Shown here in pieces: positions 1-20,085 of a stretch of 55,954 nt of DNA. The notes beneath the pieces are model-generated. The model saw only the letters and a program-made list of their open reading frames with translations. It searched no databases and was not told where the DNA came from. Within the stretch, counting starts at the first letter, position 1, and every line of letters starts with the position of its first letter. The position numbers and the translations under genes were made by a program. This stretch comes from Carpediemonas membranifera BICM (lineage: Eukaryota > Protista > Fornicata): positions 1 through 55,954 of the forward strand of contig JAHDYR010000056.1 in the NCBI GenBank assembly GCA_019828565.1, written 5' to 3'.

Positions 1-1
1 A

Positions 2-922
2 GTCCATTTGTGTTCGCGAGGAGGAAGCTTTCCATCTCCACCCCTTTGCATACATGATTATCTTCCAACCCTCCGACCTTTCGATCCTTGCCAGCTGAGC
101 CGCCAGGCGGTTGGCCCAGTCCCTGAAAGTATGTATGTGCTTCTCATACTCGATCGGCGGCCGCCCCGTCCCGACCTCCACGAAGGTGGCCGGCGGCAGC
201 CCCGTCACCATGCCGTACCTCCTCGCTTGGTCCATGCTTGCTGCCGGTATGTCCTGGTAATACAGGCCATGCCCGTGTCCAAGAATGTCCCCAGTGCTGA
301 GGTCAAAGAGTACGATCCCGCCCTCAACCGGGATGGCAGGGATCCCTGCCTTCTTGACGCCAGGGTCTGCGCACTCGAAGTCGATGGCTCCGATCACCAG
401 TCGTTTCTCCTTGTCCTTTCTAGGCATCCTCGGCGGCTGGCTGCTGACCTTGTTTGAGTCGACCTCCTCGTCCTGGTCGATTCTGTTTTGGTTGGCCCTG
501 ACCATGTCCTTGTTCACTTCCAGGAGGCTGTCGTCGAGGCTTCTTCTGCCGGGCATGGTGGCTGCTGGCGTCGTTCCTCCTTGTCCTTGACATGTTGCTC
601 CTCGTCTCCGTCGATGACCGTGCTGGCGCGGACGACTCCGGTCCAGATCGGCATGTTCGTCCCTGCTGCTGCGGACCGAGGTGGCCTTGAGCACTTCCAG
701 CCTCACCTTCCGGAACGGCGGCTCGTTGCTGGGGGCCCTCTCCCCTTCGCCCAGGATATTGGTTCTGCCCTTCAGGTAGATCCCTGACTTGTTCCATGCT
801 GCCTGCCATATGGCCGGGGCCTCCGGTGCCTGAAGCCTGAGGATGTCCCTAGCCTCCTCCATGAAGCGGCTGATGGACCATGCTGACGTGTCGCTTAGCT
901 CTAGGATGACCCTGTACTTCAT
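2..922 (-). CDS. Maelstrom-like DEDD (DnaQ-fold) nuclease, transposon-interrupted; runs off the left edge of the window
   Basis: Manually translated stop-free minus frame 922->2; it is missing from the ORF track because no stop lies in the window. It reads MKYRVILELSDTSAW...LVIGAIDFECADPG...IPVEGGIVLFDLSTGDILGHGHGLYYQDIPAASMDQARRYGMVTGLPP...KIIMYAKG. The ExoI-like D-x-E and the PxExGxVxFxLxxG block resemble MAEL domains. A probable 1-nt slip at the C-run 41-44 would give YAKGVEMESFLL. Confidence 0.6.
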   Translation of the reverse strand, partial: MKYRVILELSDTSAWSISRFMEEARDILRLQAPEAPAIWQAAWNKSGIYLKGRTNILGEGERAPSNEPPFRKVRLEVLKATSVRSSRDEHADLDRSRPRQHGHRRRRGATCQGQGGTTPAATMPGRRSLDDSLLEVNKDMVRANQNRIDQDEEVDSNKVSSQPPRMPRKDKEKRLVIGAIDFECADPGVKKAGIPAIPVEGGIVLFDLSTGDILGHGHGLYYQDIPAASMDQARRYGMVTGLPPATFVEVGTGRPPIEYEKHIHTFRDWANRLAAQLARIERSEGWKIIMYAKGWRWKASSSRTQMD

Positions 923-994
923 ACTGTCAACATCCCTAGATTATCTTTGCTAAACCCTAGATTATCTTCGACCTCAAAAAGCTAGATAATCTAC
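920..994 (+). repeat. Left terminal inverted repeat (75 bp)
   Basis: CATACTGTCAACATCCCTAGATTATCTTTGCTAAACCCTAGATTATCTTCGACCTCAAAAAGCTAGATAATCTAC; 2 mismatches to the reverse complement of 20011..20085. Confidence 0.95.
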
Positions 995-1862
995 GGTTGC
1001 AAGAAAAAATGAACTCGACGATGAGCCGGAGCTGGATCTTCAAAGTGGTATGGTAGTACTTGGCTATACCTAAGCAATACGCATGCGCAGTATCAAACTT
1101 TAAATCCTGCTAGAAAAAAGTAACATAGGGACAAATTGGAATTGAGAGTTGAGACTCAAAAAACGGGCAGGGGGGAGGAAATGGTCCATAAGTACGCCTT
1201 ATGGGTCGCTTCCTCCCCTCTGCCCCTTTTTTAATCGCAAAATCGATTTGCCGGATTTGACACATGTTTGATGTGATCAAAATGGATTTGATAGACATGA
1301 GTCCAGATCATGCAGTTGGCCATCCTGAAGCGCTAGGGCGGTCTGCAGACCGCAGCAATGCCTCTGCTGAATGCCCTTCGCCTGACGGACAGGACGCGCG
1401 TTGACTCTAAAGGACTGCATGTTTCGGCATTAAAAGAAGGTGTGGAATACAACGGAGTCATCGCCGAACCGCTCCGACCAAGTCGGTTATTAGGACATCG
1501 CGTTCAGACGCCCTCTGCAATTACCAAGTCAATAGATGGGAGTCGACCTGATCAGCACGTCATTCGGGGTCTCAGGTGACCCTATAGCTGAGCTTGGCTG
1601 GGCTCTGCTGCGGCCATGGGCCGCTAGCGCGCTGCTTGGCTCTTTTTCTCCTCGTAAGGCGGCCGTAGAGGTCTGATCTGAGCCTCGTTATAATAGTCTG
1701 CCCGAGTAGAGGCCAGCCATACCATAAATGTCCCCCAATCTCCCCCTCCCGGTCGCTCATACCTCCAAAATGGCCTATATTCCCTGTAGGAAGCTTAATA
1801 AGGGCGGATTTCCCATAAGTCGTGGCATAGAGGTGTAAACATATCCATTGACTCTGAATCTT

Positions 1863-2792
1863 TTATTTCTCCATCTGCGAGTTAAGCCAGGCCACTGCCT
1901 TTCCCGTCAAATATACCTTACGTGTGTCGTGCGCCTTCTTTGTTGCTCTTGCGGCTGAAGCATCAACAGTGGCCTGCTTCAACAAATCTCGGCAGCTAGA
2001 CTTCGGCGTCTTGGTGCCACGCCGCGTGCAGGCCCACTCTCTATCGTCCACGGACTCACCACACACAACGCATGACCCTGCGAATACGGTCGGTGGCTTC
2101 TCCTTCAGCTTCTGTCGAAGCAGATCGCACATCGCGGTCTTGACGACGCGTCGAGACAATTCATGCGTGCGCAGGGTACTAACAGGCTCAACCAACAGCT
2201 CTGTCTGAGTAGACGCCTCCTCTAGGTCTCGCACAGTCTGAGTCTCTGCATGCTCACCCTGTGGCGAAAACTGCTGGCATTTTCCCATCATCCTCGGCTT
2301 ATCAGGATCAGGACCCAGCGCAGTCATGTAAACAGGTACCTCAACCCGCTTCTCGACTATCCTGACAGGCTGGGAGTCCCTGCGGGAAGGGGCTTGCGGG
2401 TGAACTCGCGTCCTGGTCGGCCCCCCGTTCGCCTCGTTGTGCAGAGCCTCCATGAAGGCATTGAAGCCGTCATCACGGCCCACCTTCTGCGTCACAAACG
2501 ACATGACGCATGTGACCGACATCTCAAAGGATGCAAAATCGGCAGCACTGGAAACATCGCGATTGTGGCAGATTGAGTTTCGAGCTGCCAACAGCTCGCG
2601 TATATGTCTCTTATCAGCGTGGTGAAGATCAGGAACACGATGTAGGATCGCTTGCAAAAGCATAGCCGGATCCATCTCGCCACCGTCACCACGGTACCTC
2701 GCGATGTACTCCTGCAGCTTCGGAATCATCCTCAGTAGCGCTTCAAACATCATGCTGGCGTATCCTGCTGAATCCTTCACCCCAGAGCTCAT
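1863..2792 (-). CDS. Swt1-like HEPN-domain protein with C-terminal Cys cluster (transposon cargo)
   Basis: 309-aa ORF. DPAMLLQAI...RHIRELLAARNSICHN carries the HEPN R-x4-H motif; two TQT motifs; C-terminal CVVCG...C...C. Confidence 0.6.
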   Translation of the reverse strand: MSSGVKDSAGYASMMFEALLRMIPKLQEYIARYRGDGGEMDPAMLLQAILHRVPDLHHADKRHIRELLAARNSICHNRDVSSAADFASFEMSVTCVMSFVTQKVGRDDGFNAFMEALHNEANGGPTRTRVHPQAPSRRDSQPVRIVEKRVEVPVYMTALGPDPDKPRMMGKCQQFSPQGEHAETQTVRDLEEASTQTELLVEPVSTLRTHELSRRVVKTAMCDLLRQKLKEKPPTVFAGSCVVCGESVDDREWACTRRGTKTPKSSCRDLLKQATVDASAARATKKAHDTRKVYLTGKAVAWLNSQMEK

Positions 2793-3065
2793 ATCGGTTT
2801 CTTCAGAACGAAATTCTAAAGAAATGTTCGGTGGTAAGTGAGATCACTGCGCATCTAGAGACAGCAGAAACGTAACCTACAGCCCATATTGATGTGGGCT
2901 GGTCTTATCCGGATGTCCAAGGACCTTGATTCGCTCTGGGGTAGTCCCCCCATGACCGTCAGGCACGCGAACCGCATCCTGCACGAAGCGGGGATGCAGA
3001 GTCTGAAAAGACCCATCTCTCTGTCCGATCTGGATACCCCTGACGATAGATGGAATGAATGAAGC

Positions 3066-3298
3066 TGTAAACATATCCATTGACTCTGAATCTTTTATTT
3101 CTCCATCTGCGAGTTAAGCCAGGCCACTGCCTTTCCCGTCAAATATACCTTACGTGTGTCGTGCACCTTCTTTGTTGCTCTTGCGGCTGAAGCATCAACA
3201 GTGGCCTGCTTCAACAAATCTCGGCAGCTAGACTTCGGCGTCTTGGTGCCACGCCGCGTGCAGGCCCACTCTCTATCGTCCACGGACCCACCGCACAC
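3066..3298. repeat. Direct duplicate of 1834..2066 (3' end and 3' flank of the HEPN gene)
   Basis: Near-identical ~233 bp at offset 1232; explains the short ORF 3095..3307. Confidence 0.9.
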
Positions 3299-3335
3299 GG
3301 CATTCATGATTCCAAGGTCTAATTATTTACTCGAT

Positions 3336-4862
3336 TTATTCCGGCACCTCGTTGAGCAGGAAATAGTGCACTTTCAGGCGAGCATATCTCACTCTAGACA
3401 CGCTGCACTTGACCACCTTAGCCACGCCATCGCAGTCACCCACAACATCATACCACTGCCCTTCTGTGTCGCATAATGCGTACACACGCTCATATGTCTG
3501 ATAGACAGCTGTTGCCTCAAAGGGCATATCTAGCGTACAATCGTCCTCGCAAATATGGGTGCAACCAGGAGACACCCAAATCAGCCGCCAGGGAAAAACA
3601 ACACCGCCTTTACATTCAAAGGGAATGCAATCGGCGTTGCTGTGAGGCATTTCTCGCGCTGCTGGTATTCAGGCAGTAGGCCAGACTGGGCGATATGTTG
3701 GGGAACCACACCGGCGAACAGGAGTTGACTGCCGCTGAGGAAGACGTTGCAGCGACAGTCTGCCATGAGCTGGTCGACCCTGAACGGCAGCTTTTCGAAG
3801 CCCCGTATACATCTATCGCGTCCAAGTCCCAGCTTATAGTGGCGGTTGAAATCGCTGATTACCTGCTGATCGCCCGCGGAGAGGATAACTGTCCCCCTCC
3901 ATACATGATCCGATCAGGGATGAAGCCAGTGGGCACAGCGACTGGGTGGAAGACGTATCTTCTCAGATCGTCATGAACTGTGAAGCATGCACCGTTTCCA
4001 GCCATGACAGTACCGACTGGGGTGAGGATGAACCTGCGACAAGCCTGCTCCGACACATCGATCACCATCCTGTTCTTCTCCCAGGGGGCAGACTGGCCTC
4101 GAGCTCGGCGATATTAGGGCAGCTGGTGAAGGTGAGGCGGGTCGCATTCCAGTGCCAGTCCAAGCTCCATGCCCACAGACCCTTAGGTGTCCTGGTAAGA
4201 TGGCTGAAATTGCAACTGTAGACCTCGAGGGCCCTGGGCATCCTGGCTCTAATGAAGATGGCGAGGTTGTCTGGACGAAGCATGAATAGACGGCCCATGT
4301 ACATGCGGTGATGGTAGTGTGTGTTGCCATTTGAGAATTGGTAGTACTCGCCGTCCTTCTCGGCGACGTTCAGTGTGAAGAAGAACTTGCGGCAGAGGAA
4401 CCAGAGACACTTGCCCTCGGGGGCGAGAGCATTTCGGATGAGGTCCTGGAGGTCTGGGTTGGCCCCTCCACCCATAAGACACGCCCACACCGCGCCCTGG
4501 TTCAGTGTGTGCATGGCTGCCGGGAGCTCATCGCCAGGCGAGAGCTCGACGTTCATGGACAGCGGGGGTCCGTCTGCGAGGATCGAGCGGGCGTGATCTA
4601 GGAGGACTTGTGCGGTTGGTTCAAGCGGGGGGATCTTGGAGAGCGTGGCGAGGAGGGATTCGAGAGAAGGGGCGCTCGCTGGTGCAGTAGTGCTCTCTGC
4701 GTTGTGGAACGAGGGCATCTCCTCGCCAAAATGCCTGGTGTAGGCGCATTGGAGCAAGGATGGTACGTCCCCGGAGATACGGGCTGCTACAACTAGCGAG
4801 GCGCGGAATACGGAGATAAGGGCTTCTTTGATGGCTGATGGGGAGGAACTAGCACTGCTCAT
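3336..4862 (-). CDS. RCC1/BLIP-II-like beta-repeat family protein, split by about three frameshifts (cargo)
   Basis: ORFs 4062..4862, 3859..4068, 3581..3766 and 3336..3650 join into one reading through homopolymer runs (~4085, ~3895, ~3595). TRTPKGLWAW...RLTFTSCPNIAELEASLPP(W)EKNRMVIDVS...ILTPVGTVMAG is RCC1-like in style. Confidence 0.45.
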
Positions 4863-5243
4863 CGATTCCAGCGCTCAGTTCGGTGGCGACTTGTTCTCGT
4901 TCTTAAACTGCTCAATGAGAAAGGATGACAGCAGAAACGACGTCCTGGAGGACGTCCTGGTGTTGGGAGGGGGGTGTTCTTGAGCACGTGATAGTGGACG
5001 GCCTTGTTGGTGGGCGCGGCCCATGAGAAGCACCAGCGCAAGTAAAGCATTTTGCAATATATTACTTGCGTTTGCGCTGTCGTTCTCCGGGCGCACTTCC
5101 CCGGCCGCTCTTTGACACGGACATTGCCGTGGGGCCTCCTCCTCGTAGCTGTTTCCTCCCCGGGTTCTGTAAATGGTGTGTTTTGATTCATCTGTCCCTT
5201 TGTTTGTCTCGGCGTTGAACTTTGAAAGCAATAAATGGCTACG

Positions 5244-5483
5244 ATCAAGATATTATTGTCCAATGAGGCTCTTTACATCGCCTTCTAGCTCGATATTGAT
5301 GTTGTTAGTGATTTTCTAGAGTACAGCACCAGTTTCGGTAATAGGGGGACAGAAGAGCGCAAACAACTACATGGCTCCGAACTACACGCGTCTTGGCGTT
5401 GATATTGGTTATTAAATGCACTGCTGGTAGCATATTGAGGGATTTCGTCACTGTACTCGAATGCACAAGTGTGCAGTTTATGC
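5244..5483. repeat. Internal 240-bp repeat, copy 1
   Basis: Near-identical to 8514..8753; partial inverted copy at 14774..14887. Confidence 0.9.
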
Positions 5484-5564
5484 ATCTGCCGGAATCTCAT
5501 TTAAGGGAGATAACAGCGTCCTAAACAACAGGGATCTGTCAGTCATTATCAAACTTTACTTCTC

Positions 5565-6767
5565 TCACTCAGCCTCGTTGTCCCGCTTCTCCGGAGTAAC
5601 CAATTGAGCCTTCCTTGTGCCGGGACGGGTGACACCAAAGACTCGGAAGAGTAAGTCGCTCGTCTGCTCCAAACCCTGGCTTTCCTCAAGCCTCAGAATG
5701 TTGTGCCGGATCTTATCTCGGTCCTGGTCTTGAAGATGCCCGAGCTCAGCGTTCAGCCTGTTATCAAAGGCTTGGCTGAAGATGAGCACGGAATGGGCCA
5801 GGGTTAGGGGCACAGCTTGGTGACTGGCGAGCTCGCGGAACTCCTTTGGCCAGAGAATGGCGTACTTGATCATTTTGGCGTACTTACGCCGCACATTGTG
5901 GGTCTTGATGGAACTCATCTCGTGGATGCGCTTGTAGATGCCATCACAGTAGGTGTTCTTGCCAACGCGCCCAGCCAGTACATCGGCACGTAAACGTTCG
6001 GCTGCGGCGTCAAGACGGGCGACCCTACCCTCATCGTCGACGGGCATCGCTCCACGCTTCCCTGCGATCGTGTACAGCTCCAGCTGCCAAGCAATCATGA
6101 TCCGCAGCATCATCTCGCGTGTTGCACCAGACGTCATTGTCTCTAGCATGAGTTCCAGGCGGTGTTCATCCATGTAGCCAGACTGAATGACAGTAAGCGT
6201 CGTCATAGCACTGGATACTGGCGCGATAATGCCGCCATACCAAGGCTCCTCCTTGAGCACCGCGGTAACATCGAATGTCTCAAGGGTGAGATCAATCTTG
6301 GGCTTCTTCTTCTTGTCCTTCTTGCTCGCCGAAGGCTGCCCCTCACCCTCACCTGATGCTTCTTCGCCAGCCTTGCCCACACCCTCGGCCGATGCCTGTC
6401 CCTCCCTGGTGATAGAACCATCTACTTGGCAGCTCCGACGTGCGAAGCGCCTCGTAGACGGGATTGCTGCTTCTTGTACGTTCTCTGCAGCCACCACAAC
6501 ATCGCTTGTGCTCTCAAGAGGCTTTTGCTTGCGCTCTGTCAGCATCTCGACGACGTTCTCGTGAACACGGTGCTTCAGAACATCAACAACGCCTTCAGTG
6601 CGATACTTAGGCTCAATGCTGAAGTAACAAATCAATGCATGCACGATCTGGCGCTTTGATCCTTCCATCTCTTCGTCTCTTTCGTTCATTCGGAAACCGT
6701 TAAATAAACCATGGAATGGGTGGAACATGCGAGTGATCCAGACCTCAAGCGTGTCTACACACGGCAT
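5565..6767 (-). CDS. Hypothetical protein with NLS-like basic patch (cargo)
   Basis: 400-aa ATG ORF containing SKKDKKKKPK; no domain recognised. Confidence 0.7.
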   Translation of the reverse strand: MPCVDTLEVWITRMFHPFHGLFNGFRMNERDEEMEGSKRQIVHALICYFSIEPKYRTEGVVDVLKHRVHENVVEMLTERKQKPLESTSDVVVAAENVQEAAIPSTRRFARRSCQVDGSITREGQASAEGVGKAGEEASGEGEGQPSASKKDKKKKPKIDLTLETFDVTAVLKEEPWYGGIIAPVSSAMTTLTVIQSGYMDEHRLELMLETMTSGATREMMLRIMIAWQLELYTIAGKRGAMPVDDEGRVARLDAAAERLRADVLAGRVGKNTYCDGIYKRIHEMSSIKTHNVRRKYAKMIKYAILWPKEFRELASHQAVPLTLAHSVLIFSQAFDNRLNAELGHLQDQDRDKIRHNILRLEESQGLEQTSDLLFRVFGVTRPGTRKAQLVTPEKRDNEAE

Positions 6768-6834
6768 CTTGCTTCATAAATGACTGTTTATTGCCCAAAT
6801 TTTGTGTTGCGGCGTGACCGAATCGAACGAGAAC

Positions 6835-7494
6835 ATGAAGCTCACCAACAAGGCAGATACTGTGATTACGGCGGAGGAATACCAGCAATACTACTCCTCT
6901 GATGACTTTGAGTCATTTGTTGCGGCCTGTGATGAAGCAGGCATTCGTTCTGCCCACAGCACCACGTTCTCCGTCACAGTGGACAAGAATGGCTTCAACA
7001 GCGAGCTAGATCTGGCCATGGTGCCTCAGCATGCGCTTATGGGGCCGACAGTGGGCGATGGTATCCTTACCAACAAGAGCATCCCCAACGACGCAGTCAT
7101 TGGCATATACTGCGGCAAGATCATCCCCGAGCCCGAACCTGGTGCAGTGACGACCTACGTGACGAGGCTCAAGAAGCCTAACAACTTTGCTGTTGACTCG
7201 GCCGGCCTCACGTTCGGCTGTCACAAGATCAACGATGGTGCCGCTTTCTACAACGTCGTACCGGGGACGGCCTACGTTAATGTGCAGGTGGGGGACCAGA
7301 AGAAGCGTCTTCCCGTCATTCTTTACTTGGCGGATCGCGCTATTGCCAAGTTCGAGTACCTCTCGATCGAGTATGGCGAGCAGTACTGGCGTGGACGCAA
7401 GCCCATGGCCCTCTACCCCTTCTGTCTGGAGAAGATGCTTGCTGAGGCTGAGTATGAGGAGATCAACGATGTCTTAGACGCCGTTCTCTCCTAA
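6835..7494 (+). CDS. SET-domain lysine methyltransferase (cargo)
   Basis: VGDGILTNKSIPNDAVIGIYCGKII (motif I), HKINDG (RFINH-like) and ADRAIAKFEYLSIEYGEQYW (ELxxDY..YW-like); first ATG at 6835. Confidence 0.85.
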   Translation: MKLTNKADTVITAEEYQQYYSSDDFESFVAACDEAGIRSAHSTTFSVTVDKNGFNSELDLAMVPQHALMGPTVGDGILTNKSIPNDAVIGIYCGKIIPEPEPGAVTTYVTRLKKPNNFAVDSAGLTFGCHKINDGAAFYNVVPGTAYVNVQVGDQKKRLPVILYLADRAIAKFEYLSIEYGEQYWRGRKPMALYPFCLEKMLAEAEYEEINDVLDAVLS

Positions 7495-7667
7495 CCTAAA
7501 TTGAGATCCCAACAATTCATTGCTTTCAAAAGTTCAAGGGTCCTTCTACCTGGCCCATCATCACTGGGATCCTCGTGCTTGGCGCCCACATCCCCGATGT
7601 CACCCAAAAAGATCTAGAATTTTCCGAAAATCGGCTTCCGACAATTTTCATTGATCCCTGACGCTCG

Positions 7668-8513
7668 ATGGAACTGGATATTGCGTATCAACTGGTTGCT
7701 CTGAAGGAGATGAAGTCTATTGAGTCTCTTAAGATCAATTCCATCACGATTCAGAAGGAAAAGGTCCGGAAAGCTGTCATTCTTGCTTTCGCGCAGTCTC
7801 CCGCGGGTAAGAAGTGGGTAACGAGCACACTGAGGCTCTGTGCTGACCGCTACAGCGCTTCGATCCAGTACAACGTGCAGAGCATGTTGTTTGGCATGAA
7901 CTCCAACGCCACATTCAACGAGGAGGCAGCAATAGCGACTCTGCGCGTTCATGAGAGGCTCGTGACCCCGCTACACCAGTCAGTCTTCGCTAACATGGTC
8001 AGGGCCAAGCACAAGACACCGACTCTAGACGATTTCCTCGATACCGCGTGTGTCTTCCCGACTTTTACTGAGTTGGATCGCCTTGCCGCATGGGTGGGTG
8101 AGCGCAACCCCAGTGTCTGGGTCATCATGACGGAGGCTCGTATTACTGGCGTTTTAGATGGTGAGATCTATGAGCCGCTGCTTCGGGCCGTTGCTGACGA
8201 CGTTGATAGATTCACGTTCGGCAGCCCTGAAAAGTTCCTCCAGTTAACCGACACGAGCCTTGACTATGCCGTCGAGAGTGTCCAGATCAAGGACTATGCC
8301 AATCGTCGCTGCCTTGTCAAGTGGATCGGGTATCCTGTGCCTGTCACCGTTCCGCTGACCGATACGTTGCGTGAGCTGGAGGCTGGGGAAACCTCGGGGT
8401 TTGTGGGCGTGCGACGGGAGATAACCTTCTCTGGGCGGGGTCGTACAACCGGGGAAATTCAGAACAATCTTTTCAGGCGTCGGGAACCCGAGCGTGACGT
8501 TTCTGAGGAGTAA
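7668..8513 (+). CDS. Protein with C-terminal chromodomain-like region (cargo)
   Basis: DYAVESVQIKDYANRRCLVKWIGYPVPVTVP: Y...KWxGY aromatic-cage pattern. Confidence 0.6.
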   Translation: MELDIAYQLVALKEMKSIESLKINSITIQKEKVRKAVILAFAQSPAGKKWVTSTLRLCADRYSASIQYNVQSMLFGMNSNATFNEEAAIATLRVHERLVTPLHQSVFANMVRAKHKTPTLDDFLDTACVFPTFTELDRLAAWVGERNPSVWVIMTEARITGVLDGEIYEPLLRAVADDVDRFTFGSPEKFLQLTDTSLDYAVESVQIKDYANRRCLVKWIGYPVPVTVPLTDTLRELEAGETSGFVGVRREITFSGRGRTTGEIQNNLFRRREPERDVSEE

Positions 8514-8753
8514 ATCAAGATAATATTGTCCAATGAGGCTCTTTACATCGCCTTCTAGCTCGATATTGATGTTGTTAGTGATTTTCTAGAGTACAGCACC
8601 AGTTTCGGTAATAGGGGGACAGACGAGCGCAAACAACTACATGGCTCCGAACTACACGCGTCTCGGCGTTGATATTGGTTATTAAATGCACTGCTGGTAG
8701 CATATTGAGGGATTTCGTCACTGTACTCGAATGCACAAGTGTGCAGTTTATGC
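8514..8753. repeat. Internal 240-bp repeat, copy 2
   Basis: Matches 5244..5483 at offset 3270; begins right after the stop of 7668..8513. Confidence 0.9.
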
Positions 8754-8923
8754 TTTCTCGGCCAGCCGACGATATTTACCACCACAGACAGCTGCATACA
8801 GGCTGTAGACTAGACATATACAGCAGGCTGAGTAATATAGCACCATACCCCCCTACAAACCGCGAATCAACCTCAAGGTCACATAAACATAAGCGATACG
8901 GTCGGTATATCAATCCTTTACTC

Positions 8924-10800
8924 TTACTTCTTCACTGACCATCTCCTCCTCTTCAGCCCGGGAGGAACCTTGCGCAGAGTGGCGTGTCCCCTTGTCACTT
9001 CGACCGCATACTCGATTTCCCACTCGCGACACTGTTGGGCAAAACACGCCAGGGCGCTCTGGCCGTTTTCGTTGGGCTTAAACGCGACATGTGTCACCTT
9101 GCCCTCCTCAGACTTGCTAAAAACGTACATGCCGACGACTGGATCGATCTTTGGGTCAAAATCTCGGACAACATGGAGGTATGCAACGGACTTTCCAGTC
9201 ATTGAGCACCAGGCTTCAACAGCCCACTGAGTTAACCACTTCTCCTGCATGATTGGCTTACCGATGTTGCCCTCCTCCGTGACAGTGTGTACACTGCACA
9301 CTTCATGGAAAAGTTCGTCCCGGAGACCCTCCTCGGGCCGCCTGTACCCCGGAGTGGCCCGCCGGTTCATCTCTATCGCTTCCTTGTATATCTGCTCGCG
9401 GTAGTTGTCCGCCTTCGTCTCCGCTGCACACTGCTCTTCATTCGTCATCGTCTCCCAGCTCTTGAACGCATGAGGCTCCGTGACGCCCTCGATCATCATG
9501 AGGCAGTGTGTTATACAGTTGCCGTGGGGCAGGGTTTTGTATCTGACCCACTGCTTGCTCTTCTCCAGCTGATTGGCGACGTCAACTCTAAACTTGACTT
9601 CCCTGCTCCTCATCTGCTCGGAAGCTGGGTCGACGTGGTCGACCTGGACATATTCAACGTCCGACTCAGCCTCGAATGCCACCTCGTTGTCTGCCTCTTG
9701 CTCCTTATCTGCCTCACGCTTCTCCTCTGACTCTGCATTCACCTCTGACTCAGCCATCTCGTCCTCCTGCTCCTCCTCCTCTGCCTCACCCTCCTCCACT
9801 GGCTCCTCTTCCTCCTCTGACTCCTCCTCCGAGTCCTCTGGCCTGGCCTTCTCGGGCGTGATGATGAGGGCCTTGCGCTTCACAGACATGGAGGCCTCGG
9901 GCTCGTCCGTAGTGCGTCGGGGACAGGAAGTCCTGGAGACTGTGCCAGACTGTGGCGGGATGGGGCTGCATGGGAGTGATGCATCCATGGACTTGTCAGC
10001 GTCATAGGCTGCCTCTCGCTCAGCCTGCTGCTGCAGAAGGCGTCGATGCAGCGTGATGACTTCCTCACTCTTTGCCGTCAAGCTCTTCCTCAACTGCTTG
10101 ACTCTCTTCTTGTATCCTCGAACAATTTTGTGATAGTAATCGATGATAGCGCCAGTACCTGGGGGGAGCAGGGGCGTACCTTCTCCCGCGGGGGTCTCCA
10201 ACCATTCCAGGGCGATGATGTACTCTTCGAAGTACGAGCGGCAGGAGTGCTTCATGTAAGCAAGGTCTGCCTCCTTGCTGCGCACCCTGGCAACCATTGC
10301 TGTGACATGGTCGCGCACAAGCGCGTTGGTGAATGTCGCGTTGCGCCACGCCCGAACCTTGACACTCAGCGCCTCTTTTTCGATACGCGCGCCCTCATTC
10401 TCCTTGGCATACTCAGCCCTCTTGGAGTTCTTGAAGGCTGTGACAGCGGCCGACTCAAACGCCTTCATCTCCTTCTCCGTGAAGGTTGCCTCGATGTTCT
10501 CGTTCGAGGTCTTATCCTGCACCTGCTGAGACAGCAATGCCTCGAGTTCTGCCTTCTTCTCGCCCTGAATCTCGAAATATGAGCACAGGTGGTTAAAGTT
10601 GATCCCTATATAAACATTTGCACCAATTACGTACCGTTCTTGACGACTATATCGAAGATATCGTTCTCGTCGAGCAATTTGTCCCGAAGAACGGCACTCT
10701 TCGCCTTGTTTGTCTTCTTCTCCTTGAATTCGGTGATAACGGCCTCAATCACATCATCTGAGGTGCTCTCGATCCACTCGTGAAGGAATTCGAACGTCAT
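8924..10800 (-). CDS. Coiled-coil/acidic protein with C-terminal OTU-like cysteine protease domain; one 29-nt intron (10606..10634) (cargo)
   Basis: Splicing GTACGT...TATAG joins exon 10800..10635 (MTFEFL...VKN) in frame to 10605..8924, giving 615 aa. YKTLPHGNCITHCL is DGNC-like; a distal VTRGHAT supplies a His. Confidence 0.6.
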
Positions 10801-11711
10801 TCTTCTCTTCGTTATATCCCAATAATGGACATATAACAGAGATGAGAAAATTGCCAGTAACCGTAGGCAACGGGGTGTCGGAAACGTTATACCATACAAA
10901 CGGGGGATATAATCGCTCCGAAAACACCCATTATGTGGACTGAATGGCGATATAACGTATGGGGAGTGATCCGGCGAGCTTTCGGGCGGTGCAGGCTAAG
11001 ACACACCAAGTCTGTGGTGCTATAACGTACCTCGGGACGCACTGTGGAGGCCCCTAGAGTACTCGGTCATGGCATGTCAGACCAAGGGTCCCTCAAATCT
11101 GGCCCCATTCAGGATGCTCCCCCTAAATGTTCCGTTGCAAGCGTCTGACGGGCGTTCTCTGGATACCGACCAAGATGGAGGTCACGTGGATGAACGGACG
11201 ATAATTACGGTATTCTGGCCATGCCTGGTACTCTCAAATCATATATACTGATCTGTAGTTCATTTATAGTTCATATCGTATGATCATGATGGACTTTTGG
11301 TACTTGATGTTGTTTAGAGATAATTGTTGCTTTAATGATGCTCTGCGCCCGCATACTGATGTTTCTTAGTGTTGTGCACATGCCTACTACGTTAAAGCCG
11401 CCAGTATTCTTTCTATTCTTAAGTTCGCCATTTCAATCTCGTTGCGAGCATAAAGTGCACATTGTGAAAGGAAATTGGGTGGTTATATAATGGATACAGG
11501 GCAGGAAAAGGTACACGAATGCCGTCCTGAGGTTTGGCATGGGATACTGATCTCATACGTCAAAAATGGGCGGTGGTATTCGAATTTCAGAATTTCGGCA
11601 TGTCCGAATTCCGAGGCAAGCGGGTAGGGTGTACAAAACCTGGCCTGGGTCCCTACTGGAGCTAATAGATAACAGTATCACCGTGTATTCGGTTTTCAGA
11701 AATATAACTTG

Positions 11712-11909
11712 TGTTGGTATTGCAATTTCAGAATTACTTCCAGTACCGGAGATTGTCTTAGAATTTGGATGTTCATGACTACTTTAAAATTTTAAAAAGT
11801 TCCCATGAACCCACTCCAGCTCAGGATTGCGGATCTGAGCCAAGTTTAGGTCGAATCCAAGTATTTGATAATTTTGTATGTACGAAATTCTGAAATTGCA
11901 ATACCAACA
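11712..11909. repeat. Perfect 24-bp inverted repeat pair (11712..11735 / 11886..11909)
   Basis: TGTTGGTATTGCAATTTCAGAATT and its exact reverse complement, with a 150-bp spacer. Confidence 0.85.
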
Positions 11910-11922
11910 GAAAACTCGTGTT

Positions 11923-13110
11923 ATGGAGGTTCTAGCTGCAAATAACGACGATATTGTTAAGCGCTGGTCTGATAGAGGTTCAGTGAAGACGCGTAGTGTG
12001 TACAAGAAGCACCTGGAGGACGTTTTGGCCAGCATTTGCCAGGAAACAGGCGCTGAAATGCAGAAGGGCATCGAGATTGTCCGAAGCGACAACGTTACGA
12101 CTTATTTGGCGCATTATTTCGCTACAAAGACGCCTGCTATGGCTAAGAGGATCGTTTCGGCTGTTCAGTCTTTCCGGAACTTCGACTTGCCACATCCCGC
12201 GAAGCCGTTGTCCTGGAAAGAGGAGGAAGAGGTGTCGCCTGCATCAGTTGAGAGTCTCCCCAGCCCGTATGGCGCCATTGCCATTCTGCTCAACCAGACG
12301 GGCTGGGAGTATTCGTATCTCCAAGGTAATCTCCCCGATGCGATAGACCTTACCTCGTGCCCGAGCTGGATGGGCTTTGGCACGCTCAAATCGGGATTCC
12401 CGCAGGCCAGTGCTGTATCGGAGGCGCTCAAGGTTCAGGGGTTGACGGTTCGCATGCTTCGCTTGTCGCAGCGGATCAACGTGTCCACCGATAGGATGCA
12501 GTCTATCGGCACGCTAGAGCGCCGCGGCAGACCGCGGGAGAAGCCTCAGAAGGTCATTAAGGACAAGCGCATCAGCCTGACCGATGAGCAGTTCAGGCAC
12601 CAGTTGGCGTCCAGTCACTTAACGACCACGCGGCGCCCAACGATCCTCGATCTCAACCCGGAGATCCGAAGCTCTGCCGACCTGGTGCCGCCGATGCTCG
12701 ATGACTGGCTTTACAACAGGCTCAAGGCCAGAATGATCGAGCTTCACGATACTAAGAAGAAAGAGAGGCAAAGCGAGGCTGACAAGGAGGCGGAGTTCGG
12801 CTCGCCGACTCGCGAGACAGAGATGCCAGAGGGCGAGAGAGAGGGCGATACTGACGAGGAGGCGGTGTCCGACGAGCCAGCTTACCAGGCAGAGTGGATG
12901 CACTACGAGGTGCCAGCTCGCGAGGAGAGCGCCTTTGGTGAGGAGGTGGACTTATGCAAGAGTGCCGATGAGGAACCAAAGATCGACCACGACGAGCATG
13001 GCGGGGAGGTGGCGGGCAGAGATGGTGATGGGGAGATTCAAGAGAACGTGATTGATGAGGAGCGCTCAGAGAGCGATACTGCCGACAGTATCGTCTTTTC
13101 CTTCATCTGA
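11923..13110 (+). CDS. Hypothetical protein with AT-hook-like RGRP motif and acidic tail (cargo)
   Basis: ORF 11878..13110, likely start MEVLAAN at 11923 because the upstream ATG runs through the inverted repeat; ERRGRPREK; D/E-rich C terminus. Confidence 0.65.
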   Translation: MEVLAANNDDIVKRWSDRGSVKTRSVYKKHLEDVLASICQETGAEMQKGIEIVRSDNVTTYLAHYFATKTPAMAKRIVSAVQSFRNFDLPHPAKPLSWKEEEEVSPASVESLPSPYGAIAILLNQTGWEYSYLQGNLPDAIDLTSCPSWMGFGTLKSGFPQASAVSEALKVQGLTVRMLRLSQRINVSTDRMQSIGTLERRGRPREKPQKVIKDKRISLTDEQFRHQLASSHLTTTRRPTILDLNPEIRSSADLVPPMLDDWLYNRLKARMIELHDTKKKERQSEADKEAEFGSPTRETEMPEGEREGDTDEEAVSDEPAYQAEWMHYEVPAREESAFGEEVDLCKSADEEPKIDHDEHGGEVAGRDGDGEIQENVIDEERSESDTADSIVFSFI

Positions 13111-13274
13111 CATTGTAAAGAGGAAGAGTTTATGATTGGAGCATAGCGGATGTCCATAAACACCATTCATAAGCCAGTCCTGTCTTGTTTTCCACTGCTA
13201 CTTCTCTCGTTGCGACGCACAGCTAGCTGTCGCGAAATGCACTTTAAGACCAATTTTCACACAGCTACCTGTGC

Positions 13275-14570
13275 ATGGTGTTCGAGCTAGATAGCGACAA
13301 GCTGGAGCGACTTACTTCCTTACCTGGTAATAGTAGACAATATCTGCACGACTTTGAACCTGAAAAGCTGCAGGTCGTGATCAAAGTTGATGAGCATTAT
13401 GATATGGAGGTTCCCACCCTGCTAGCGCTCAAGGACAGTCCGCATGTCCTCCCTGTCGTCGATACAGGTTTTGTCGACCGTGATCCAGCCTTCATGGCTC
13501 CTTTGGTCAACTGTACCCCCTTCGCTGACATCTGCCAGGCTCACTCCAGCGTGCAGTTCCGCTATGTTTCGCATCTGCTGCAGGCAGTATGCTACATGCA
13601 TGACCACGGGGTTGTCCATTGCGATATTAAGCCAGACAACTTCCTCTTCAGCAAGACTCAGAAGGGATACCTCATTGATTTTGGGTCTGCAATGAGGAAG
13701 CCGGCTAATGGCGACGACAGGTGGGCCATACAACTGAGATTTGTATCCGAGTATCGCGGCACCCATGGATATTTGCCCCCAGAGCTGTTCTACGAGTACC
13801 TTGTCTCGCGCTCAGTGATTACTGCTGCACGCGACACCTCCAAGCTCGCGCGCATGACGGCAGGGGCTCTTTCCGTCACTTCTTATGTCGTGACACCTGC
13901 ATCGGACATTTACTCTTGCGGTGTAGTCATTTTGATGCTCTTTTACGGTCTCCCCAAGTCCCCCTTTGCCGCGAAGGTGACTGACATGGGTGCAAACATG
14001 GCGCAGATCGACAACAAGAAGAAGAAGAAGATGCTGAAGCTTGGTAGCTTGCTGAACTGGTGCCAATTCTATGGTGGGCAGTTGCAGTTGTCACCTCAGG
14101 CACAGACACATTTCAAAGATTGCCTCGAGTGTGTCAACGTGAACTCTGAGCTCCCGATTCGCGGCACCACGCCACCTACTTGTCTCAGCCTGTACGACCT
14201 GGCAATGCAGATGCTCCACTTCGACCCAACAAAGCGTCCCACTGCTGCCGAATGTCTTGACAAGCTCAAGGTCATCATGCGCGTGCATGAATGCGTCGCC
14301 AAGCCGAGTCCGCTTCTGTTAGATGATACAGAAGAGGTCACCCTGTCTGCAGCTCAGCGAAAGAGACTGACCGACTGCTGTCAGCGAGGGTTTGAGGGTC
14401 AAGTCTTCTATCGGCGCTGCATAGTGTGTGGTAGAGACCTTCATGGACGCGAGAACGTCAGCTGTGACACATGCCACAAGGGATACAGGCAGGTGAGCAC
14501 CAATAAGTGCGCAAAAGGTGTGCGCGGAAGACTGCACAGGCAGTTTATTGCGATGATTGAGCGGACGTAA
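13275..14570 (+). CDS. Ser/Thr protein kinase with C-terminal Cys cluster (cargo)
   Basis: VVIK, HCDIKPDNFL, DFG, GTHGYLPPE, SDIYSCG, DPTKRPTA; C-terminal CIVCG...CDTC. Confidence 0.9.
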   Translation: MVFELDSDKLERLTSLPGNSRQYLHDFEPEKLQVVIKVDEHYDMEVPTLLALKDSPHVLPVVDTGFVDRDPAFMAPLVNCTPFADICQAHSSVQFRYVSHLLQAVCYMHDHGVVHCDIKPDNFLFSKTQKGYLIDFGSAMRKPANGDDRWAIQLRFVSEYRGTHGYLPPELFYEYLVSRSVITAARDTSKLARMTAGALSVTSYVVTPASDIYSCGVVILMLFYGLPKSPFAAKVTDMGANMAQIDNKKKKKMLKLGSLLNWCQFYGGQLQLSPQAQTHFKDCLECVNVNSELPIRGTTPPTCLSLYDLAMQMLHFDPTKRPTAAECLDKLKVIMRVHECVAKPSPLLLDDTEEVTLSAAQRKRLTDCCQRGFEGQVFYRRCIVCGRDLHGRENVSCDTCHKGYRQVSTNKCAKGVRGRLHRQFIAMIERT

Positions 14571-14773
14571 AGAGATTGATACTTTCTGTGATGCAGGAAT
14601 GAGATCAATGCTGCTGACAGGTCTCGAGATGGCAGAGGTGCTGGAGAAGAGAGCGCAGAAAAGGCATCAGAAGTAAATGAACGAGGTAAATTCCAGTTCG
14701 CCGGAGATGATATCCTTCCTCGTACGCGGCATGTGTCTTGGGTCTTAAGTTCGCCATTTTAATCTCGTTGCGA

Positions 14774-14887
14774 GCATAAAATGCACACTTGTGCATTCGA
14801 GTACAGTGACGAAATCCCTCAATATGCTACCAGCAGTGCATTTAATAACCAATATCAACGCCGAGACGCGTGTAGTTCGGAGCCATG
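14774..14887. repeat. Internal repeat, partial inverted copy 3
   Basis: Reverse complement of 8640..8753. The adjoining 14743..14787 also matches 11417..11461. Confidence 0.85.
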
Positions 14888-15008
14888 CATTCAAATGGCT
14901 GATAATGCACTCGTCCTTATCTTAATACAACATCAACTCCTTTTCTCCGCAATGCGGATGAGAATGCCTATTCTCGTGATCTATAACTACCAATCATGTT
15001 TTCGTTCT

Positions 15009-17564
15009 TTACTCATACTTGCCGCAGATGCACACATCCAGTGAGATCTCTCCTTCCTCATGGACATCGATGTCTAACCATTGCCCGTCAAACACGAGCC
15101 CTACCTGCCTCAACACCTTCTTCCATAGACCATCCACTTGACCTTCAAACAGAGGTAACAGTTTCTGACAGTCTCCCTCGTCCAATGTTCCAGTGCCCTC
15201 GCTCCGAATACGGATCCAGTGTTTGGCGTCCTTGCAGCAGCGATGGACGCGCATTGTCTTCAGACGTATTTGGTGGGGAACGTCTGTTGACTGTCGCCCA
15301 TACGAGACGACGCCACGGAGGAATCGGTAAAACAACTCGACCTGCTCCTTCAATATCGTTCTCTCAAGGACCATCTGGTTGCGCCTTAAGTGTACTCTAC
15401 TTTCCTGATTGCCAATAAAGTCGCGCTCGAATGACTCCTCAATAATCCGGCCAAGTGGGACTCGGATTTTTGACTGAATCTCCGGCAACACAGCAACTCG
15501 CGCTAAGCCATGAAGTGTGTCGATGGAGGGAGCCTTCTTGGCTACCTTAGACGGCGGCCGGATTGGAATAGACTCCGACACGGTGCTGGTCGTGCTCAGA
15601 CACATTGTCAGTGAAAAGAGGTGAACAAGCAACGCTGTCAGTCGATGCCAGGTGATAATGTCATCTGTGGCCTCCTCGTGAGAGTAATAATGCTCTTGCA
15701 GGTAGGCAACGAGTCTGAAAAGTGGCTGAACGGGGGGAGGGAATGCCATGTAGAGACCGTTTCCAATTGACGCGATCATCTTCCTCCCCTTCACTTGCTC
15801 ATTACAGCCAGTCGTGCGACTGGGAGGTTCAAACTTAGCCAGCCTGGCGAGGTCAGCGTTTCTGGCCTTCTTGGTCTTGATTTCCTCCGGGGTAGAGTCT
15901 GGGTCGACCTCAATTGGCTTGAACATCCGACAAATGTTGTGTATCAAGGAGACGAAGTCATGACTGAGGTGCATGATCGGCGGGACAAGGAAGATTTTGC
16001 CCCTATCGAGAGTTGGGTCATCCGAGTTCTCGAATAGGCTGGGCATGATGCACTTATTCTTCTTGTTGTAGAACGACCCCCACTTCTTCTCTCTATCCAG
16101 GACTGTCTTGTCCTCAACAGACATCTTCTTCGCATACATCACGTCTGCAATCGTGTTTCGTGGGGTGAGACCGAATGGGCTCCAGGCCTTATTGTCAGCA
16201 TGTACCGAGCTGAATGGAGAGGGATAGCTGCCGCCAATCAAGGTTCCACAGACTTTTGACATCGCTGGGTGGTCTGCGATGAACATAACGCGAGTGACAC
16301 GGCACAGGAGACCGGTATTTCTCACCTCAAGTGCCTCGCGATGGGTACTCTCGACTGAGCGCTCGATGAAGTCGAAGAATTCTCCAATGCGCTTCTCTGG
16401 TCCGTTGTACTCGAGTATGCGGAAGGGTGGTGTTCCGCCTGACGGGAAGACTTTGCCGGAGACATCGATAAACCGAACCTTCACAGATGTAGTCAACCCT
16501 CGCCATCCATCGACCCAGACGAGAAGATCAAGCGGCACTGTCTGAGTCTCTTCAGCTTGAGTCTGCGCTGTCAACTGCTTGCCCACGTTCTTACGAGCAG
16601 CCCTTGACCTCTCGAGATCGATAGGCGAAGCCACCGCCTGGCGATAGTACCGCATGAGGTCAAACTCAGCGTGTTGCACATGGGAATACCTGCCGCTAGA
16701 CTGGAGACGCGGGTTGAGACCGGCTCTCTTCATCACGTCATTATGTGCAGTTCGCTTCATTGCCGATTCGTAGAAGATGCACACCGTCGTACCTCTGAGC
16801 ACTTCAGTGTTATAGTCGTCGCCGTCGAATGTAGCGTTGACTTGTTCGAGGTCTGCGTCGACGTGGGTAATCAGGTCGAGGTCATACTCGCGGTGATCCT
16901 TGTCCGTCCTCTTTGCTCGTGTCTCTTGAGTGATCGCCATGGGTATGTAGCCCTTTAGGGCCTTTTTCAAGTTCCTATGCGACTTGACAATGGTCTCAAC
17001 GTCTGCGATGTTCCGAATGCTGCACTGAAGCGACTTGACTTGGTTTGTGACCTGATTGATGTTGATAATGTCAAGGTTGAGTCTCTGTGCAAGGGCTTGC
17101 ATGATGTGAATCTCGTCATTGACTGCATTCACGCCGATCGTGATGGCCCTGAGCTCGTTGGACACCTGCAGAAGACGTTCAGTGTCAGCAATACGCTTAA
17201 GTAGACGAGCATTCTCTGCCTCGAGGCCGAAGCTATCAGAATGCAGAACATATGCACCAACGTAAAGGTGACTGGGACCAGAGCGGTGTGCCTTCTTCTC
17301 CTTTGAGATGCTAGTGGATGATGGCGCTGGGTAGAGATTGCTAGAAATAGCCTCACGCGATACAGCGCCGATATTGATTAGTTCCTGCGCGATGCGGGCT
17401 AGCTCGAGCCTTTGCTGGTGTTTGGAGGTATCAAATCCGTTAATACGGCGATCCACTGCGTCAATCGAGAGCCAGACGCTGCAAAGGATGGTATTGATGT
17501 CATCAGTGCCCTCCGGAGCATAGATAGATCCGTTAGACAGTTTCCACTTCAGTTGAAGCGCCAT
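15009..17564 (-). CDS. DDE transposase, CMC(CACTA/Chapaev)/Transib/RAG1-like, divergent
   Basis: 851 aa. LLVWVDGW (D1), VMFIADHPAMSKVCGTLIGGSYPSPF (D2, D-x-PA-x2-K-x2-G pattern), PPIMH, IIEESFER (E). It lies inside TIRs with a 3-bp TSD. Confidence 0.72.
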   Translation of the reverse strand: MALQLKWKLSNGSIYAPEGTDDINTILCSVWLSIDAVDRRINGFDTSKHQQRLELARIAQELINIGAVSREAISSNLYPAPSSTSISKEKKAHRSGPSHLYVGAYVLHSDSFGLEAENARLLKRIADTERLLQVSNELRAITIGVNAVNDEIHIMQALAQRLNLDIININQVTNQVKSLQCSIRNIADVETIVKSHRNLKKALKGYIPMAITQETRAKRTDKDHREYDLDLITHVDADLEQVNATFDGDDYNTEVLRGTTVCIFYESAMKRTAHNDVMKRAGLNPRLQSSGRYSHVQHAEFDLMRYYRQAVASPIDLERSRAARKNVGKQLTAQTQAEETQTVPLDLLVWVDGWRGLTTSVKVRFIDVSGKVFPSGGTPPFRILEYNGPEKRIGEFFDFIERSVESTHREALEVRNTGLLCRVTRVMFIADHPAMSKVCGTLIGGSYPSPFSSVHADNKAWSPFGLTPRNTIADVMYAKKMSVEDKTVLDREKKWGSFYNKKNKCIMPSLFENSDDPTLDRGKIFLVPPIMHLSHDFVSLIHNICRMFKPIEVDPDSTPEEIKTKKARNADLARLAKFEPPSRTTGCNEQVKGRKMIASIGNGLYMAFPPPVQPLFRLVAYLQEHYYSHEEATDDIITWHRLTALLVHLFSLTMCLSTTSTVSESIPIRPPSKVAKKAPSIDTLHGLARVAVLPEIQSKIRVPLGRIIEESFERDFIGNQESRVHLRRNQMVLERTILKEQVELFYRFLRGVVSYGRQSTDVPHQIRLKTMRVHRCCKDAKHWIRIRSEGTGTLDEGDCQKLLPLFEGQVDGLWKKVLRQVGLVFDGQWLDIDVHEEGEISLDVCICGKYE

Positions 17565-17629
17565 CTGTCAGTCGCTCTTTCAAGAATTCTAAAGATCCTA
17601 AAAATGCGTGACTTCGAGAAGATCATCTA

Positions 17630-18865: not shown

Positions 18866-19724
18866 AGATACAATTGAATCTTTTCAAACATATTTTCATG
18901 AAGATAGATCCAATGAAACTATGTACCATGAGCCCGATTGCTCAGTGATTATGTGATAATCCTGTGTGACCCAGGACAGCGTGCTCCTGGAATCAACAGG
19001 GCACAAAACACCCTGCGTATTCCGGTAGCACACCGTTCTGACTCATACGTCCGTCTCTGGTTGTCGTATACAGGTCTATTTACGTGTTTGGCGATGGCGC
19101 TCCCTTAAATCTGCTTGAACGGCGTGTCGTGGCTGTCAGTATGCTGCAAATGTCGCAGCGAGAAAGGAGTCACCAATCGCGTTCAGCTTTCTTGTTTCTC
19201 GCCTGATACTGCTCGTAATATCGTTCAAGCGTGAATCTATGAAGTAATGGGACTGAATGGCCTCTATTGCGTCAATTTCTTGCGTAATCGTTGTTGAATG
19301 GCCTAGAATAGATGTTGCAGCTGCTTCCAGCTCCTGTTGCATGCTAAATGCTGTGTTTTGGACAATTGGTCGTGTTCAGGCAGATTTTTTTCGTGCAAAG
19401 TGCAGGCTAATACGCGCCCTTAAACTGTGGGATCAGCCGCTGGGTAAATATACTGAGAAAAAACCATATAGCTGAGTTCACTGTCTTGTGCTGAATACGG
19501 TGGCGCCATTTATTTCTCTGAATCGCTAAGTTTTGTCAGCGTTGACCGCGCACGACCGGTCGTCCTTACGCGATGACACCCAGCCCATCTTGTAGGTCGG
19601 GTGGCCATACCTCGCGGCCTTGCTTGCTTTTTCTTTGACGAGCAATATTCCCTGAGTAATAGCCTCTCCTTTTCTTCCAATTCGACTCTAGCCAAGTCAA
19701 AAAACAAGAAATCGACCATATCTC

Positions 19725-19828
19725 AAAATCTAACAGGTAGATTCACTCTGAAAGTGATTATGCGCATATGTACCTCCTTTCAACTACTCACATAATCACT
19801 ATCGTAGTGAATCTACCTGTTAGATTTT
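19725..19828. other. Long hairpin/palindrome near the right end of the transposon
   Basis: Perfect 23-bp arms 19725..19747 and 19806..19828, plus inner 10-bp arms 19753..19762 and 19791..19800. Confidence 0.8.
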
Positions 19829-20010
19829 CTGTTATTGTCCATTTTATCGTTTCGTCTTAACCTGCACGGCGAAATGCTCAAACCAGGCAAGGAGTCAGAG
19901 CCAGAGCTTCTTTCCATGCTCTAAGTACATCATATGGACTCTCAAGAAGACCTTCGTTTATCTCTAAATAGCTTAAATTTAATGAATACTTCATTTCTGA
20001 GCAAGAAATT

Positions 20011-20085
20011 GTAGATTATCTAGCGTTTTGAGGTCGAAGATAATCTAGGGTTTAGCAAAGATAATCTAGGGATGTTGACAGCATG
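20011..20085 (-). repeat. Right terminal inverted repeat (75 bp)
   Basis: Reverse complement reads CATGCTGTCAACATCCCTAGATTATCTTTGC...CAAAACGCTAGATAATCTAC; followed by TSD CTT at 20086..20088. Confidence 0.95.

Follow-up and report, generated by a model that had tools for sequence, protein, structure and literature searches.

Results

A large TIR element adjoins a minus-strand reading frame at the end of contig C57

The stretch of DNA analyzed here, hereafter the window, comprises positions 1-55954 of contig C57 (55,954 nt) of Carpediemonas membranifera BICM; further contig names (C1, C8, etc.) refer to the same assembly, which consists of 24.2 Mb in 69 contigs with 57% GC and was obtained from MinION R9.4 (1D reads) and Illumina sequencing (PMC8516963). 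Around the reading frame at its left end, the window contains the following features:

1..919, minus strand: LINE ORF1 fragment, codons 247 to about 546 of 780, with the first part of a predicted Maelstrom-type exonuclease domain (IDFE, PVEGGIV); 96-97% identity to at least 40 other copies; truncated at the contig start
918..919: target dinucleotide TT, duplicated as TSD where C8 has this junction; the right flank in the window begins with CT
920..20085, plus strand: TIR DNA transposon of 19,166 bp with several genes, collinear with the copy at C8:990539-1009737 (99.2%)
920..994, plus strand: left TIR; its terminal CAT (920-922) is an outward ATG in frame with K247 of the LINE ORF1
1863-2792, minus strand: leftmost cargo ORF, pointing toward the left element end
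13275..14570, plus strand: cargo ORF with a protein kinase domain (PF00069, E 5e-24)
15009..17564, minus strand: 851-aa ORF, probable transposase (weak language-model lead)
20011..20085, minus strand: right TIR with terminal CATG; the outward ATG opens a 10-codon frame only
20086..20319: unique right flank, downstream of the stop of an 876-aa ORF, with a chance ATG at 20095-20097, which the original prediction read as the former start codon
20320-22950, minus strand: 876-aa ORF without a Pfam match, its stop 234 nt from the element

The original prediction had described a TIR transposon at 920..20085 adjoining an ORF, and this element proved real: its TIRs measure 75 nt each and are 97% complementary. 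At least 30-40 copies of the 19-kb element are present in the genome. All 22 element ends that we examined begin with CAT(A/G)CTGTCAAC, and in the TIR comparison CAT(A/G)CTGTCAACATCC emerged as the start shared by all 22. The inserted element is unusually large, with its 19 kb and several cargo genes. Its 851-aa ORF is a probable transposase. Neither Pfam nor PDB sequence searches matched it to one; the weak resemblance to RAG1, Transposase_21 and Plavaka clusters seen by the Atlas language model (score 0.87) serves as a lead only. CA-type termini are a transposase recognition feature in CACTA, Transib and RSS ends. In the simplest view, the 5′-CAT end of the element would likewise be present because its transposase recognizes CA-type termini. 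Neither the family of the 19-kb element nor that of the LINE was described in the literature that we searched.

The adjoining reading frame is part of a multi-copy LINE

Read on the minus strand from position 922 to position 2, the frame is open for 307 codons, starts with MKYRVILEL and contains the motifs IDFE and PVEGGIVLFDL. It had been taken for a host Maelstrom-like defence gene. The genome argues otherwise: window positions 1-919 match at least 40 genomic places at 95-97% identity, and these LINE copies are dispersed, share a common 5′ boundary and are 99-100% identical to one another. Extension from the copy on C8 indicated a unit that starts 1.2 kb upstream of the junction and ends about 5-6 kb beyond it. 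In L035 (C1:587500-596500), an intact copy, ORF1 comprises 780 codons and is followed by an ORF that encodes an APE endonuclease domain (PF14529, 30.5 bits vs a cut-off of 27.4; L035:5001-6119). Three copies (C1:596189, C26:182239 and C6:737633), which diverge from the C8 sequence after the endonuclease, carry an RVT_1 domain (117 bits) about 500 nt past it. The copies at C1:587500 and on C8 are devoid of RT and have a 1077-bp tandem duplication in its place; a search for RT in pieces of the C1:587500 copy accordingly returned no match, because this copy is an RT-less variant. Thus, the many copies together with the APE endonuclease and RT downstream of ORF1 identify the repeat as a LINE with RT-less derivatives. 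By this genomic context, we assign the window ORF to ORF1 of a young multi-copy LINE, and not to a host (defence) gene.

The window fragment is identical to the C8 copy over the 180 nt adjoining the junction. Farther out, the two differ by about 3%: there are 17 substitutions, of which 13 are A/G transitions, as well as some 10 indel events; one private variant that was tested recurred in no other place in the genome, and each of three indel clusters totals a multiple of three. A rare 4-G homopolymer variant is common to the window fragment, C8 and only two other copies. Compared to intact ORF1, the fragment shows two compensated frameshift stretches, followed by an uncompensated -1 shift at AKG (the 4-G variant, as in C8), and blastx aligned it to ORF1 residues 247-540 only. 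The frame is thereby lost ahead of AKGxxME, CxxH and HCxxxD. Of the five catalytic residues and the four zinc ligands, three each lie past the contig end, the Cys/His/Asp motifs being missing in the window. As assembled, the fragment is non-functional and unable to encode the Maelstrom-type domain.

The element interrupts codon 247 of ORF1 and the original insertion is found on C8

Eight uninterrupted LINE copies (L003-L010) provide the empty site. Across it they read ...CCCTGTACTT / GCCGTCCTCTTGC (slash marking the insertion point), corresponding to ...AYEQEDG-KYRV on the gene strand, or in a longer reading ...CCCTGTACTT / GCCGTCCTCTTGCTCG, corresponding to ...V-A-Y-E-Q-E-D-G-K-Y-R-V, with ...GTACTT / GCCGTCC directly at the junction. 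These uninterrupted copies have 246 further codons upstream of KYRV, which starts at residue 247 of 780 (or at residue 205, if the start is set at M43, where the homologs P0001 and P0002 begin). We therefore place the insertion, from the alignment of empty and filled sites, in codon K247 of the 780-codon LINE ORF1, upstream of its predicted Maelstrom-type exonuclease domain.

This position conflicts with the original prediction of an insertion in codon 4 of a gene starting MSDKYRV, which the transposon end would have shortened by only two residues. Excision of the element plus one CTT does spell ATG TCT GAC AAG TAC AGG GTC, as had been stated, but the two flanks were never contiguous and the right one is unrelated, so that MSDKYRV is a chimera of unrelated flanks. 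A search of the genome that allowed up to 3 mismatches found no MSDKYRV-type empty site. Moreover, homologs start at a different Met, an outcome that had been named beforehand as refuting the prediction: upstream of KYRV, all paralogs as well as the diverged homologs P0001-P0003 continue for over 200 residues. As for the right flank (20086-21000), it occurs only once in the genome and has no relation to the LINE.

Contig C8 harbors the missing half. Its left junction is base-for-base the same as that of the window, and at the far end of its 19.2-kb element the sequence ...GTTGACAGTATG / TTGCCGTCCTC continues into the upstream half of the LINE that the window lacks (right junction, ...CAGTATG / TTGCCGTCC). 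Comparison of the C8 junctions with the eight empty sites thus defines the element as CAT...ATG and its TSD as TT (2 bp). On this evidence, we identify C8 as the site at which the original insertion is preserved intact, with both LINE halves flanking the element and TT duplicated. A matching 2-bp TSD was also seen in eight of ten further paired copies (AA, TG, TT, AA, TA, AT, GT and GA), so the 3-bp CTT duplication proposed earlier is a chance match. The window copy has TT on its left and CT on its right and is therefore without a TSD.

Tabulating the targets of other copies, as had been suggested, yielded these varied dinucleotides for the ten pairs. None of 21 other element flanks matched the LINE or the other loci to which they were compared; there is thus no sign that the element targets LINEs. 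A second junction within ORF1 was found at C54:892087/8, where an element lies in codon 522 in the opposite orientation. C35 offered a possible partner junction (2 mismatches), which was rejected as a chance TTGCCG match in non-LINE DNA.

ORF1 contains a Maelstrom-type exonuclease domain

The resemblance of IDFE and PVEGGIVLFDL to MAEL/DEDD nucleases had been noticed from the letters alone. Pfam scans did not return Maelstrom for the window fragment, the ORFs of copy L004 or the intact 780-aa ORF1 (below the PF13017 gathering threshold), PDB sequence searches found nothing for ORF1, and a word-index protein search retrieved paralogs from the C. membranifera genome only. A three-sequence profile of ORF1 residues 400-700, searched against 1.8 billion representative proteins, found 15 proteins; P0017, at the end of this list (E 4.5e-4), is itself PF13017-positive (69 bits, cut-off 22). 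The direct Pfam check hence gave no match, but the profile did reach a recognized family member.

Aligning a 12-sequence alignment (A3) with P0017 by hhalign gave 98.1% (E 1.2e-13) over 180 columns, with IDFE facing IDFE, AKGxxME facing AKGPTME, and CPYH...YHCALAD facing CKYH...YHCALAD; the A3 profile itself retrieved only noise from the PDB by sequence. An AlphaFold (AF2) model computed from A3 reached a pLDDT of 86 (the single-sequence AlphaFold model, at 40, was unusable), and its top Foldseek match was 5af0, Bombyx MAEL. In VIA-align, the model matched Bombyx MAEL over 200 residues (Z 11.9), followed by Drosophila MAEL and the Lassa NP exonuclease (Z 11.4 each), with generic DEDDh exonucleases within 1 Z unit of the MAEL matches. 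These profile and structural matches bear out the earlier reading of the two motifs.

Residues of about 418-650 of ORF1 present D-x-E (IDFE), AKGxxME, C-x2-H-x8-C and H-C-x3-D. In intact copies, the signature of the ECHC zinc site reads IDFE ... CPYHRHTAGCYHC and is conserved in homologs; the window fragment retains only its Glu. This pattern agrees with published descriptions: protist MAEL domains are reported to retain the DEDHD residues together with those specific to MAEL (Zhang et al. 2008, PMC2628886), and an ECHC zinc finger is common to Maelstrom and arenaviral ExoN (PMC7968707). Profile, motifs and model together support homology of ORF1 to Maelstrom/DEDDh nucleases, with a predicted RNase H-like DnaQ/DEDDh fold that combines the DEDDh residues with the zinc site.

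The outward ATG of the element end

The terminal CAT of the left TIR does, as originally proposed, read as ATG directly before AAG (K247) and in frame with it, giving MKYRVILEL; at the level of sequence this is correct. The same holds at the C54 junction in codon 522, where the terminal ATG is again in frame (MQLARIE...). An in-frame terminal ATG is thus present at both distinct ORF1 sites (2/2), for which the chance is about 1/9 (0.11). Every TIR has a second outward ATG, 11 nt upstream of the terminal one and out of frame. In the window, this inner ATG opens a 4-codon uORF (ATG TTG ACA GTA TGA) that overlaps the terminal ATG, and the 380 nt in which transcript starts had been proposed contain a further five ATGs. 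Over 25 element ends, the frame of the outward ATG was open for at least 100 codons in five, no better than other frames. CAT termini, and with them outward ATGs, are present at 22/22 ends, and the ATG frames of the 25 ends show no excess of long ORFs. Among the low-depth contigs of one sequencing run, which is not on record as RNA, none bridges 919/920: one of them runs along the uninterrupted LINE, and a second has its start at the TIR. The in-frame reading would be a one-in-three coincidence, and coincidence is most likely what places an ATG from the transposon end in frame here.

The window copy carries mismatched flanks

Since contig C8 retains this junction together with both halves of the LINE and the duplicated TT, the flanks of the window copy are mismatched. 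Over its whole length the window element is collinear with that of C8, and three other copies are structurally different. The leftmost 5 kb of the element show 3 substitutions to C8 vs 11-12 to each of the three other copies; over the last 2.7 kb, C8 differs by 35 substitutions and C42 by 1. This mosaic similarity argues that an exchange between copies occurred somewhere in the history of the element. We infer that the two ends of the window copy do not stem from one insertion event. Simple duplication of the C8 locus fails on the ~3% difference in the LINE beside a near-identical element, barring errors at the contig end or further exchange.

A copy of the ~19-kb TIR element adjoins a 919-bp fragment of a young multi-copy LINE, very probably in a nested arrangement. 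Its mismatched flanks could have arisen when dispersed copies of the element underwent homologous exchange (by deletion, translocation or break-induced copying), a C8-type copy having exchanged with a copy resident at the unique site, or they could reflect a mis-join or poor end of a Nanopore-based contig that begins inside a repeat. C. membranifera has been reported to be without a canonical replication-origin complex and several DNA-processing complexes (PMC8516963).

If the flanks were an assembly artefact, the first 919 bases of C57 would not lie beside this element copy in the cell: the assembler would have crossed the near-identical 19-kb repeat into reads from the C8 locus and left a poorly polished contig end. 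Several features fit such a route. The contig begins inside the LINE (window base 1 is C57:1), its junction is that of C8, its element is the same structural variant as C8's, the 4-G variant is confined to the window, C8 and two other copies, and the window copy has no TSD; moreover, the differences from C8 are rich in indels (~10 events beside 17 substitutions, 13 of them A/G transitions), include the private variant that was tested, and are thus typical of residual R9.4 Nanopore error, MinION R9.4 1D reads having been used for the assembly (PMC8516963). Nevertheless, the 180 nt at the junction and the whole element are clean, which would confine the low quality to the last 740 nt, the frame-preserving indel clusters hint at real divergence and not at random errors, and a contig that stops in a repeat would be just as likely at a real rearrangement breakpoint. 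We consider an artefact possible but doubtful. An independent second hit would instead have the same TT of ORF1 struck in two LINE copies by target preference, with later deletion of the right half in the window. The identical junction and orientation in a LINE fragment 3% different from C8's would be explained in this way, and the third junction in ORF1, on C54, indicates that LINEs are hit repeatedly. Yet target dinucleotides vary (AA, TG, TT, TA, AT, GT, GA) and share no flanking sequence by eye, none of the 21 other element flanks matches the LINE, and the same base and orientation would be met by chance about once in 10^4, which renders a second hit highly improbable.

Two further readings concern the gene and not the flanks. 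That the element sits in codon 4 of a single host Maelstrom-like gene, MSDKYRV, either knocking it out or placing it under an element-internal promoter, drew on flanks that can be joined into ATG TCT and so forth, on the existing in-frame ATG and 307-codon open frame, and on the MAEL-like nature of the ORF. It is hardly tenable any longer in the face of a flank that is LINE ORF1 in at least 40 copies, of uninterrupted copies that all run 246 codons farther upstream, of a right flank that is unique, unrelated and 234 nt past the stop codon of another ORF, of a genome devoid of an MSDKYRV allele, and of a family TSD of 2 bp instead of 3. Alternatively, an outward promoter together with the terminal ATG could express N-terminally truncated products of any ORF hit, here a truncated LINE ORF1/MAEL nuclease that might, e.g., interfere with the LINE. 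CAT termini at all 22 ends, an in-frame ATG at codons 247 and 522 of ORF1 (its two distinct junctions), and a minus-strand cargo ORF (1863-2792) that faces the left end and makes read-through transcripts conceivable are consistent with such a read-out. Set against this, two in-frame cases out of two have a chance probability of about 0.11, the ATG frame reaches 100 codons at only 5 of 25 ends with other frames as good, the terminal ATG of every TIR is preceded at 11 nt by one that is out of frame, with five others inside 380 nt, and the downstream ORF in the window is frameshifted and without most of its catalytic residues; we deem a functional read-out very unlikely. Somewhat less remote, albeit still improbable, is a combination in which real mismatched flanks and mosaicism reflect a chromosome-rearranging exchange, and CAT termini occasionally yield translatable, N-terminally truncated LINE ORF1/MAEL products. 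As a whole, the locus is very probably explained by a nested transposon arrangement with mismatched flanks and a coincidental ATG.

Discussion

What lies at the end of C57 is a nested insertion of the ordinary kind, one mobile element having entered another. Had a gene for host small-RNA defence been disabled or rewired with a donated start codon, this would have been a striking case of transposon-host conflict; one selfish element inside another is common and without consequence for a host gene. What the locus offers is, on the one hand, a clean pair of empty and filled sites through C8, which fixes the family ends (CAT...ATG) and the 2-bp TSD. On the other hand, copies with exchanged flanks matter both for assembly quality and for repeat-mediated rearrangement in the C. 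membranifera genome. The more interesting fact here is the Maelstrom-type exonuclease domain, which belongs to a LINE ORF1.

With respect to known systems, this domain is closest to MAEL (PF13017) in the protist form that retains DEDDh, which ORF1 resembles in its catalytic and zinc motifs, in profile and in the predicted model. It differs in being located inside a LINE ORF1 and not in a host HMG-MAEL protein, and in that the Pfam model gives no score; the window additionally holds only the first third of the domain, frameshifted. The arenavirus NP exonuclease provides another parallel, with Lassa NP among the best structural matches of the ORF1 model.

The element itself is reminiscent of CMC (CACTA/Mirage/Chapaev) and Transib/RAG1-like DDE transposons in its 5′-CA termini, long TIRs and subterminal repeats, short (2-bp) TSD and large putative transposase ORF, although Transib and RAG have TSDs of 5 bp as opposed to 2 bp in the C. 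membranifera element. Outward-reading transposon ends are familiar from the read-out promoters of maize Mu TIRs and the hybrid promoters of bacterial IS elements. The end of the C. membranifera transposon could in principle likewise drive or start the expression of flanking genes; unlike in Mu and IS elements, it is the ATG alone that is seen here, from the sequence, with upstream ATGs present and in-frame fusions not enriched. The closest match for the locus as a whole is the insertion of a DNA transposon in a retrotransposon combined with ectopic recombination, in which one mobile element likewise interrupts the coding region of another, and in which an intact, TSD-bearing case (C8) alongside a copy with mismatched flanks and no TSD is the classic sign of exchange.

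A second junction between the transposon and LINE ORF1

Copies of the ~19-kb terminal inverted repeat (TIR) element carry an outward-reading ATG at their ends, which at the window junction lies in frame with LINE ORF1. On contig C54, a further family member adjoins codon 522 of this ORF (QLARIERSEG) with its right end.

C54:892087/892088, within extracted locus L039 (C54:889000-896000): TIR element/LINE ORF1 junction, in the orientation opposite to that of the window junction

Here, too, the terminal ATG is in frame with LINE ORF1, and the frame that it opens runs for at least 171 codons. Because the nearest upstream left end of a TIR element, at C54:860135, has a non-LINE flank, this copy either has mismatched flanks as well or is located in a nest of elements.

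LINE variants and a neighboring repeat

Downstream of the endonuclease ORF, LINE variants devoid of reverse transcriptase (the C1:587500, C8 and C56 copies) carry a tandem duplication; in other LINE copies, reverse transcriptase is found ~500 nt past the same point. A separate 3.7-kb repeat borders the C8 LINE and has at least six further near-identical copies, full or partial (C6, C16, C26, C1, C39).

C1:593547-594941 (L035:6048-7442): 1077-bp tandem duplication
C8:985608-989325 (L011:609-4326): 3.7-kb repeat distinct from the LINE, immediately upstream of it

Internal organization and mosaicism of the TIR element

Within the window copy, the following features were mapped.

5370-5483, 8640-8754 and 14773-14887: three copies of a 114-115-nt repeat
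13275-14570: cargo ORF encoding a protein kinase domain (PF00069, E = 5e-24)
19709-19844: imperfect 54-nt inverted repeat, 85% complementary, 28-nt spacer

The internal repeats share 98-99% identity, one of the three being inverted relative to the other two, and the 54-nt inverted repeat lies close to the right end, every copy of which carries it. In a Pfam scan at E 0.01, the only match among the element's other nine large ORFs was a sub-threshold one, Big-like (16.6 bits; cut-off 27), in the ORF at 6802-7494.

Over its first 5 kb, the window element (920-20085) differs from the C8 copy (C8:990539-1009737) by three substitutions. Across the last 2.7 kb, it shows 35 substitutions relative to the C8 copy and only one relative to the C42 copy (C42:155725-175603). 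Copies of the TIR element are mosaics, a substitution pattern suggesting that gene conversion or recombination between them is frequent.
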